DNA of 63,844 nucleotides, filler included, from Olpidium bornovanus S191 (GCA_017911155.1; 34 parts of 34 records of this genome joined end to end with filler, not necessarily neighbours in it), one strand, 5' to 3'; counted from the whole stretch's first letter, positions 52,767-54,769 are shown. Program-made: numbers and translations. The notes: generated by a model not told the origin, from the letters alone.

Positions 52767-53376
52767 TTTTTTTTTTTTTTTCCCCCCCAACCCCCCCCCC
52801 NNNNNNNNNNNNNNNNNNNNNNNNNNNNNNNNNNNNNNNNNNNNTTAATTAATTAANNNNNNNNNNNNNNNNNNNNNNNNNNNNNNNNNNNNNNNNNNNN
52901 CATGAGGTTTTCGGATTTTAGTTTCGAGAATTCTCCGACGGTTGCCAGGGATGCCCCCAGCGACCTTCCCCCGCGCGAAAGAAAATTTCCCGCGAGGGGG
53001 TTTCCCGGGGGGAAAGGGCGGGGGGAAAGCGGCCCCTCCTTTCCCTCGCTCCTCTCGCTCCGCGTGTGGAGACCGCGTGGCGGCCCACGCGTGAAACACG
53101 CGAACCCCGAAACGCGGCGGTCACCGCCCCCCCTGCCGCACCCCTCCCCGCCCCAGACCCACCGCCGCTCCCCGCCCGCACGCGCCTTCCTCCGCGCTCC
53201 CCGCAGCGGGCCTCCGCCTATTAATTTACCGTAGCCGTCCGCCCGGGACCTCTCTTCCCCGCGCGTTTCGAAAACTCCCGCCCGCCCCGTCGAGTTTCGC
53301 CCTCCCATCGGAAACCAGGAAGCGACAAATTCTCTCTCTTTTTTTCTAGAAAAAAGAAAATCTGCACCCCGAGAAA

Positions 53377-54051
53377 ATGCGCTTCTCTCCGATGATCTTT
53401 TCCGGCCTGGCCGTCGCGTGCGCTGCCCTGTCCGCCGTCCACGCCTTGCCCCACCCCGCGCCGGCCAGGCCCGGCGAAGTCGCTGCGGCGGCGTCGCCGT
53501 CGTTCGTCCCGCGCGTGGCCGGGGCGCTGCCAGAGGCGGCGGCGGAGTCGGCCGCGGTTGCGGCGGAGCCGGAGAGGCGGCAGCGCGCGCCCGCGCTCAA
53601 GAAGAGGTTCGCCGGGGCCGCCGCGAAGGTCGTCGGCAAGGTCATCCAGGCCCCGTTCAAGGCGGCGGCGGCCACCGCGAGGTTCGCGGGCCGGACGGCC
53701 ATGGGCGCCGTCCGCGTCGCGGGCAAGATCGCCGCGTTCCCGTTGAAGGCGACGGCCGGCGTCGCGCGCGTCGCCGGCAAAGTCGTCGCGGCCCCGTTCA
53801 AGGCGGTCGCCGGCGTCGCGCGCGTCGCCGGCAAAGTCGTCGCGGCCCCGTTCAAGGCGGTCGCCGGCGTCGCGCGCGTCGCCGGCCGCGCGGTCGAGGG
53901 CACCGTCAAGTTCGCGGGCAAGGTCGCAGCGGTCCCGATCAGGGCGGCCTACAAGGGCGCGACGCTCCTCGGCAAGGCCGTCAAACGTCCCTTCAGGTCG
54001 AAGAAGGGTAAGTCCGCCCGGTTGACCGAGCCCGCCGCCGTGTTCGCATAA
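53377..54051 (+). CDS. Secreted precursor: signal peptide + acidic spacer + KKR site + cationic amphipathic 18/11-aa repeat domain
   Basis: MRFSPMIFSGLAVACAALSAVHA-LP signal; LKKR|F at 53607/53608; GC3-rich codons; 54-bp DNA repeats. A possible GTAAGT donor at 54008 may change the last residues. Confidence 0.85.
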   Translation: MRFSPMIFSGLAVACAALSAVHALPHPAPARPGEVAAAASPSFVPRVAGALPEAAAESAAVAAEPERRQRAPALKKRFAGAAAKVVGKVIQAPFKAAAATARFAGRTAMGAVRVAGKIAAFPLKATAGVARVAGKVVAAPFKAVAGVARVAGKVVAAPFKAVAGVARVAGRAVEGTVKFAGKVAAVPIRAAYKGATLLGKAVKRPFRSKKGKSARLTEPAAVFA

Positions 54052-54769
54052 CCCGCCGCGGCTGTCGCCTGATCGGCGGGACGGAGCATGAGTTCTATTC
54101 AAACGTCGGGAAATCGGGAACTTCCGCGCCGTCTCGGTCCTTAGACGCGGGTGGGATGGGGACAAATGTCCCTCCCCGTCGAGCGAGCTTTTGTACCCTA
54201 GGGCGCANNNNNNNNNNNNNNNNNNNNNNNNNNNNNNNNNNNNNNNNNNNNTTAATTAATTAANNNNNNNNNNNNNNNNNNNNNNNNNNNNNNNNNNNNN
54301 NNNNNNNCCCTGCGAAAAAAAATAAAAAGAGAGAGCGATAAAGCAAACGTTTTGGAATGTTTGTGGGCTCTCGCGATCGCCAAACCGAACAAATACGCGT
54401 TTGTCCGGATGGCCGGCAGACCTTCATGGATCCAGTTCCTGTTGTATTCACTGCACCGCGGCAGATTCGAAAAGGCCGTTTAGATAAGAAACGTGCCATT
54501 TTGGCGGCCGCAGACAAGATCAAAGGCCGGCGGCGACAGAGTACATCATGGTCGTTTTCCCCGCATACCTTCCATGCTCATGTGACTCATGTTGTCGCTG
54601 ATCCCGTCGACGGGGTCCTCGTCAGGGAACGGCCCGTTCATACTCTTGGTGCTCTCCACGTACACTGCCTGCGGCGCGAAGTTGACGACGGGGGGCAGTG
54701 CTGCGGCATCCTCCTGTGCTCCACCGCTTGAAACGTCAGCCGCTGGCACGCAGGCCGTGAGTAAGGATG

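Follow-up and report, generated by a model that had tools for sequence, protein, structure and literature searches.

Several helical antimicrobial and cytolytic peptides are made as preproproteins, among them the cecropins, the dermaseptins/magainins, and pleurocidin, which form a functional class and not one homologous family. Their precursors carry a signal peptide, a spacer, and a dibasic site ahead of a Lys-rich, Cys-free, acid-poor amphipathic helix. Lytic, Lys-rich helices with a narrow polar face are grouped as class L in the Segrest classification. Amphipathic helices assembled from 11-mer or 22-mer repeats are seen in the apolipoproteins, synuclein, group 3 LEA proteins, and perilipins, and extracellular structural repeat proteins are typically rich in Ala/Val/Gly/Pro and free of Cys and acidic residues. 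[quoted passage not shown]

Here, we analyze an ORF of 224 aa (53377–54051, plus strand) in a window of 63,844 nucleotides, i.e., the whole stretch of DNA studied, filler included. Our best reading of its product, as far as function can be read from its organization, is a secreted, lineage-restricted protein that would bind anionic membranes or polymers via a Lys/Arg stripe. A sequence-only reading of the same DNA had proposed a secreted precursor layout for it, and every element of that layout is present in the ORF, as follows:

53377..53445, plus strand: signal-peptide-like N-terminus, residues 1–23 (rule-based; predicted cleavage VHA/LP)
53446..53607, plus strand: Ala/Pro/Glu-rich spacer of 54 aa, a putative propeptide (by composition), ending in RRQRAPALKKR with the dibasic KR at residues 76–77
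53608..54006, plus strand: cationic repeat domain of 133 aa, comprising a 7-aa partial unit and two 65-aa super-repeats (18-11-18-18), the final unit trimmed to 14
53770..53877, plus strand: two DNA-identical 54-nt units within the repeat domain (53770–53823 = 53824–53877, 0 nt differences)
54007..54051, plus strand: non-repetitive C-terminal tail GKSARLTEPAAVFA and TAA stop (GC3 12/14; contains GTAAGT)

Coding periodicity of the ORF

The ORF is the sole gene-like one within the piece spanning 52901–54207. Since the region is GC-rich (65–81% in the ORF and 55–78% in the flanks), stop codons are rare, and an open frame carries no evidential weight here; four further ORFs of 190–314 aa overlap this one on both strands. 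The GC content at codon positions 1, 2, and 3 of the ORF is 0.72, 0.60, and 0.93, respectively. When followed in 60-nt windows, GC3 climbs to 0.85–1.00 right after the ATG and holds until the TAA at 54049–54051, and the windows upstream and downstream show no such signal. The ATG at 53377 is the first start codon past the in-frame TAG at 53347, the nearest upstream in-frame stop. The non-repetitive prepro part (231 bases) has the signal too, with a GC3 of 70/77 (Fisher p = 4e-4) against equal-length flanks that lack it; hence, the periodicity does not simply stem from the repeat unit. The plus-strand frame is very probably coding, and we consider it highly likely that the ORF is a real gene. 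Further, 19 Lys codons (AAG/AAA) are kept in the ORF despite the 93% GC3, i.e., against the compositional pull to Arg, which would be consistent with selection favoring Lys over Arg at the repeat positions. A scan of the piece for bacterial promoters and terminators returned no matches. This negative, the long non-coding flanks, the layout of an intronless ORF preceded by a TATA-like element, and contig totals of 47–89 million letters in the public runs that contain the sequence all point to a very GC-rich eukaryote, over a bacterium, as the probable source.

A possible intron that had been raised at 54008 did not hold up: the GTAAGT at this position was rejected as an intron donor, as the codon periodicity continues through the 14 codons to the TAA (GC3 12/14) and a contig from a public run (X1, below) is colinear across 53857–54207. 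In our best reading, the gene is intronless and lineage-restricted.

Presence in public runs and the 5′ region

Across 7 studies, 18 public runs contain a near-identical sequence, nearly all of them under one organism label (the RNA or DNA type of the runs being a guess); the sequence is therefore a real genomic or transcribed one and not an assembly artifact. The share of the piece's sampled words recovered in any single run is at most 0.64. The contigs of run X1 cover 53247–54207, extend 331 nt past the piece, and are interrupted only where the two identical 54-nt units lie. They differ from the piece by one or two bases in ~940, and ~99.8% of the sequence is kept in other isolates; the coding part covered by the contigs is identical or nearly so. 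No matching read turned up among ~10 million each in three raw RNA runs from 2026 that carry this species label, a count made with no control stretch for the presence of the organism and hence no valid test of expression.

Two features lie upstream of the ORF:

53219..53228, plus strand: TATA-like element TATTAATTTA, the sole AT-rich block in an upstream region of 74–78% GC, with a putative promoter role
53247..53376, plus strand: possible 5′ untranslated region, within X1 contig 1 (53247–53784) and devoid of codon periodicity

The element TATTAATTTA sits 19–28 nt upstream of 53247, where the gene-covering X1 contig ends. The 346 bases upstream of this point (52901–53246) have no X1 contig coverage, while the ORF, which is equally or more GC-rich, is covered at a depth of 42–60. 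Coverage starting near 53247 may mean either that the X1 contigs are transcript assemblies or that the upstream part is strain-specific or mis-joined. An onset just past TATTAATTTA would fit a TATA-directed transcript start, which is suggestive but no proof, given that the RNA or DNA nature of the runs is guessed. 

At 53330–53349, 28 nt ahead of the ATG, AG follows an 18-nt polypyrimidine tract (ttctctctctttttttct). The arrangement resembles an acceptor for 3′ splicing or trans-splicing, but the X1 contig runs colinearly through it, and the TAG at 53347 that closes the frame upstream falls in this stretch. A single A>G difference in run X1 occurs at 53353, likewise within the presumed 5′ untranslated region. 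Several upstream motifs at 52960–53030 and 53261–53290 are of the TTTCCCGC / TTTCGCGC-like type (gaaaatttcccgcg, ggtttcccgggg, tttcgaaaactcccgcc).

Signal peptide, spacer, and putative processing site

The N-terminus starts with MRFSP, continues into an uncharged hydrophobic core of 16 residues (Kyte-Doolittle mean of 2.2–2.4 over residues 6–21), and reaches VHA/LP, with small residues at positions -3 and -1. We called the signal peptide by the von Heijne rule combined with the Kyte-Doolittle profile, and the hydrophobic core and the VHA/LP site agree on the length of ~23 aa that had been proposed. By the same kind of rule-based reasoning, no hydrophobic segment follows the signal peptide. The product is probably secreted.

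The spacer had been described as acidic and Glu/Ala-rich. Its richness in Glu and Ala is borne out, but its acidity is mild only: it has 5 E versus 8 K/R in 54 aa, or 5 E versus 2 R when the last 11 residues are excluded. Being barely acidic, it would neutralize little of the +26 charge of the downstream domain. The spacer ends at LKKR/F (residues 74–77/78), located where the first reading had placed it, and among the KR sites of the protein KKR/F alone is not trailed by Pro. Cleavage here by a dibasic convertase is putative, and 'Kex2' in this context stands for any kexin- or subtilisin-like dibasic convertase. Monobasic cleavage is disfavored when the next residue is Val or Phe; as the residue after the unit-end Arg is always one of these two, we think monobasic processing at that Arg unlikely.

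In-silico cleavage at KR/RR yields fragments of 45, 9, 127, and 20 aa, with every repeat inside the 127-aa fragment, in line with the earlier remark that the repeats are not separated by KR in the manner of KEPs. The combination of a signal peptide with no transmembrane segment is KEP-like (rule-based), but we rejected membership in this class because dibasic sites do not separate the repeats.

Architecture and origin of the repeat domain

The mature part, counted from FAGAAAK, spans 147 aa with 17 K, 11 R, and 2 E, for a net charge of +26. This reproduces the earlier tally of 28 K/R and 2 E with no Cys, Asp, or Trp, to which the absence of Asn and His can be added. A programmatic check recovered the parse into 7/18/11/18/18/18/11/18/14 residues, followed by a 14-residue tail, exactly as it had been given. 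At the DNA level, Tandem Repeats Finder detects 3.2 copies of a 54-nt period (91% matches), and a self-comparison is best, with an identity of 0.64 in both cases, when the sequence is shifted by 54 nt or by 195 nt. The exact identity noted between two of the 18-mers extends to their DNA (53770–53823 and 53824–53877), pointing to either recent duplication or gene conversion, and 53770–53877 is likely a site of copy-number variation among isolates. The X1 contigs break precisely at these units, and short-read contigs cannot give the copy number.

Alignment of the 11-mers to the 18-mers gives VAG[KR], a 7-residue gap, and then 7 residues, such that an 11-mer equals an 18-mer minus VVAAPFK. Given this alignment and the equally good shifts of 54 nt and 195 nt, the array is a 7-aa partial unit followed by the two 65-aa super-repeats, and both 11-mers trace to one 21-nt (7-residue) deletion that was duplicated afterwards; they are hence not two independent designs, and the phase-preserving deletion counts as a single event. 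Pairs of units differ by 5–11 non-synonymous versus 1–3 synonymous codon differences, and despite these replacements a skeleton of G3, K/R4, P9, K/R11, and K/R18 is kept, a sign of constraint on the pattern.

Amphipathic register and predicted structure

Across residues 7–123 of the mature part (~120 residues), the spacing from one K/R to the next is solely 4 or 7. As a consequence, the hydrophobic moment of the 133-residue core peaks sharply at 99.5–100 degrees, with a value of 0.43–0.46 versus 0.17 +/- 0.03 in shuffled sequences, none of 2000 of which reaches it, a significance inflated by the common descent of the units. Apart from this, there is just one peak, at 160 degrees, which is the harmonic of the 18-residue period. 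The helical wheel of the consensus unit places K4, K11, and R18 at 300, 280, and 260 degrees, with Ala/Gly on both shoulders and Val, Phe, and Pro occupying 0–180 degrees. The 7-residue deletion behind the 11-mers keeps the helical phase. The claim that units of 18 and 11 residues hold a single face in register is thus upheld by both the K/R spacing and the moment peak.

AlphaFold2, run with no alignment, models helices at residues 71–118 and 123–202 of the whole protein (mean pLDDT 54.8) and at residues 2–41 and 46–124 of the mature part (mean pLDDT 66.6, half of the residues at 70–90). In the latter model, the helix is interrupted only once, at AAFP of the fourth unit, before giving way to 23 unstructured residues at the C-terminal end. 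The models, of low to moderate confidence, lend modest support to a helical propensity of the repeat domain. Val, Gly, and Pro make up 31% of the mature part (46/147), a composition that disfavors a helix in solution. We think it somewhat more probable that the domain becomes helical upon binding than that it does not.

Search for relatives

No convincing relative is present in the sequence, locus, and fold libraries searched, and no known family fits. In Pfam, the only model touched is DUF7055 (PF23157), with a score of 18.1 bits where the gathering cut-off is 27.6 (E = 0.0022); the match pairs one low-complexity stretch of 26 residues (144–169) with positions 29–54 of the 66 in the profile, and membership was rejected as the score falls below the cut-off. 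A literature search found no mention of DUF7055, and one for similar repeat proteins turned up nothing relevant. The Apolipoprotein, LEA_4, Synuclein, and Perilipin models gave no Pfam match at E up to 10, nor did Pfam return Hexapep. There was likewise no meaningful match in an NCBIfam scan, none at E <= 0.01 in a word-index protein search, none at E <= 10 in a sequence search of the PDB, and no usable one in an ESM Atlas feature search with the whole protein or the mature part. A look-up of the exact 224-aa protein gave no record, and no related loci were found in JGI metagenomes, GTDB genomes, or IMG/VR. The clear match to LEA, lipid-droplet, or other characterized proteins that would have countered the initial proposal was looked for in Pfam, NCBIfam, phmmer, and PDB searches, and none emerged. 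As the ORF's own protein is absent from the libraries, with the proteome perhaps missing from them, paralogs or close orthologs could exist unseen.

An exhaustive phmmer search against 1.84 billion cluster representatives gave four weak matches (E 6e-6 to 4e-4, 21–26% identity), one being a TACC protein and the other three (P0001, P0002, P0004) being proteins of 840–960 aa with their own 18-residue G..G..K repeats. We rejected all four as homologs, as they appear to be matches of periodicity between unrelated architectures. The three longer proteins contain long arrays of an 18-residue xxGTLxxxGxxxKxxxKx repeat, accompanied in one of them by Laminin_G_3 and DUF2341, and look like an unrelated family with the same period and G/K spacing. 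Fold searches are uninformative for a long-helix model of this kind: with the mature-domain model, Foldseek against the PDB retrieved generic long helices (best E = 0.69; ESCRT-III, PspA, and chemoreceptor hairpins), and an Atlas shape search retrieved generic long-helix proteins at TM < 0.5.

Proposed function and alternative explanations

We propose that a cleavable signal peptide routes the product into the secretory pathway, where the sole exposed dibasic site, KKR/F, may serve to remove the 54-aa Ala/Pro/Glu spacer. The repeat domain of ~130 residues would probably be disordered in water because of its net charge of +26. On meeting an anionic surface, it might fold into a long helix, kinked at the Pro residues, with all Lys/Arg on one narrow stripe (260–300 degrees), Ala/Gly on the shoulders, and Val/Phe/Pro on the opposite half. 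Such a helix would be of the lytic type, Lys-rich with a narrow polar face and no acidic residues, and its likeliest action would be to bind and then disturb or coat negatively charged membranes, as an antimicrobial or cytolytic factor. Taken as a whole, a secreted preproprotein with a membrane-perturbing or membrane-coating amphipathic helix, e.g., an antimicrobial or cytolytic one, is a tentative reading to which we give somewhat less than an even chance, and membrane activity of the repeat domain itself would be, if anything, slightly more doubtful. Counting against a lytic action is the size of the cationic domain, which at 130 residues or more is far beyond any classical helical antimicrobial peptide. 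In a bolder and unlikely version, the protein would represent an undescribed effector class, namely an unprocessed 130-residue polycationic 'ruler' helix acting as a giant lytic or coating protein or as a polyanion scaffold, which arose de novo in one GC-rich eukaryotic lineage via amplification of the 54-nt unit.

A close rival, though one that we hold to be rather unlikely in itself, is a structural or adhesive extracellular protein in which a linear polycation of ~19 nm binds anionic wall or matrix polymers instead of acting as a membrane toxin. Its ligands could be acidic or sulphated polysaccharides, polyphosphate, or extracellular DNA, with the Ala/Val/Gly face serving self-association or coating. 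The same anatomy (composition, charge register, and helical wheel) would serve it equally; the Ala/Val/Gly/Pro-rich, Cys-free, and acid-poor composition counts in its favor, and a domain of at least 130 residues that lacks sites for internal processing is better suited to a scaffold than to a peptide toxin. However, Pfam, phmmer, and PDB searches gave no match to a wall, matrix, or adhesive family, and the protein has neither glycosylation-prone Ser/Thr/Pro blocks, nor a C-terminal anchor signal, nor residues for cross-linking (no Cys and one Tyr).

Less probable still is that the ORF is non-functional, be it an open GC-rich minisatellite, a newborn or decaying ORF, or the shadow of a coding opposite strand. 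Several long ORFs do overlap on both strands, no relatives and no exact protein record were found, and the three RNA runs had 0 reads. Yet the GC3 signal runs exactly from the ATG to the TAA, the non-repetitive 231 bases included, and the sequence is ~99.8% kept in other isolates. As for the opposite strand, an antisense frame of 191 aa (53346–53921) has, from its coordinates, the same third codon position as the plus-strand frame; but its start codon is TTG, it closes at 53921, which is 130 nt short of the end of the periodic region, and its product would be an unremarkable Ala/Thr/Pro sequence. A canonical ATG is found only in the sense frame, as are the signal peptide and a charge register with physical meaning.

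A very improbable alternative is a β-solenoid fold of the repeat domain, each turn taking up 18 residues as three hexads, in the manner of left-handed β-helix proteins or of the prokaryotic and viral surface proteins with 18-residue G/K repeats among the weak phmmer matches. We considered it because 18 = 3 x 6 and because the weak phmmer matches P0001, P0002, and P0004 carry 18-residue G..G..K repeats; a loose hexad pattern, V-A-G-x-x-x, can also be traced in the unit. Against this, the 11-residue units disrupt a hexad or 18-residue coil yet keep the helical phase, and a Lys would face inward in the hexad. Ala accounts for 30% of the mature part, the only type of structure predicted by AlphaFold2 is helix, Pfam gave no Hexapep match for the protein, and the phmmer matches in question are weak (E 6e-6 to 4e-4, 21–26% identity) and of unrelated architectures. 

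Equally far-fetched is a two-part organelle-targeting signal (signal peptide plus transit-like region, as in secondary-plastid algae) delivering a basic repeat protein into an organelle, to which the Leu just past the predicted cleavage, the ensuing stretch containing Ala/Pro/Ser/Arg, and the existence of very GC-rich algae with secondary plastids lend some color, but the 5 Glu of the spacer are atypical of transit peptides and neither family nor locus supports it.

Comparison with known systems

The preferred reading, a secreted protein that would bind anionic membranes or polymers via its Lys/Arg stripe, places the locus nearest to the prepro helical antimicrobial and cytolytic peptides (cecropins, dermaseptins/magainins, pleurocidin; class L). 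It shares with them the succession of signal peptide, spacer, dibasic site, and Lys-rich, Cys-free, acid-poor amphipathic helix, along with a charge density of ~0.18 per residue, a narrow high-Lys polar face flanked by Ala/Gly, and Gly/Pro hinges. When held against this class, the layout and amphipathic register are putatively those of its members, with a propiece that is weakly acidic; in place of a short mature peptide (~12–50 aa), there is a domain of 127–147 aa whose internal dibasic sites are all trailed by Pro. Unlike these peptides, whose cationic part has 20–45 residues, the cationic part here has 130–147, arranged behind a barely acidic spacer as a tandem of 18/11-residue units uninterrupted by processing sites, and Pfam, phmmer, and PDB searches gave no sequence similarity to the cecropin, dermaseptin, magainin, or pleurocidin families. 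With the fungal KEPs (e.g., the precursors Ustilago Rep1 and Candida Ece1/candidalysin), it has in common a secreted precursor, a Kex2-type KR site, and tandem repeats over much of the protein.

As in the apolipoproteins, α-synuclein, group 3 LEA proteins, and perilipins, a long amphipathic helix is built from whole-turn units (11 residues or 3 turns in theirs, 18 residues or 5 turns here), and as in apoA-I, Pro punctuates the units; a lipid- or surface-coating role is plausible. The helices of those proteins, however, are zwitterionic, with acidic residues in the middle of the polar face, whereas the 147 aa of the mature part here include 2 Glu and no Asp, for a net charge of +26; moreover, LEA proteins, perilipins, and synuclein lack the signal peptide seen here. 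Given the lack of both a Pfam profile match and an acidic polar face, we rejected assignment to the LEA, apolipoprotein, perilipin, or synuclein type. The type I fish antifreeze proteins, in particular the hyperactive 'Maxi' (PDB 4ke2), also have an Ala-rich long helix with 11-residue periodicity, and Maxi was at rank 33 in the Foldseek search with 30% identity and an E of 7.0, which is not significant. Antifreeze proteins present Thr/Ala ice-binding faces and are not polycationic, whereas the register here is carried by Lys/Arg.

Were the ORF not expressed, it would merely be a GC-rich repeat ORF. If it is expressed and secreted, its product would resemble the helical cationic antimicrobial and cytolytic peptides in design and not in descent, while being unusually long and unprocessed, with a charge register kept through ~35 helical turns, and it could be a lineage-specific effector or defense factor. 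It would then allow one to ask, in a natural system, how membrane or polyanion binding is affected by lengthening and repeating a class-L-type helix, and would provide a clean case of a new gene arising from minisatellite-like amplification under phase constraint.
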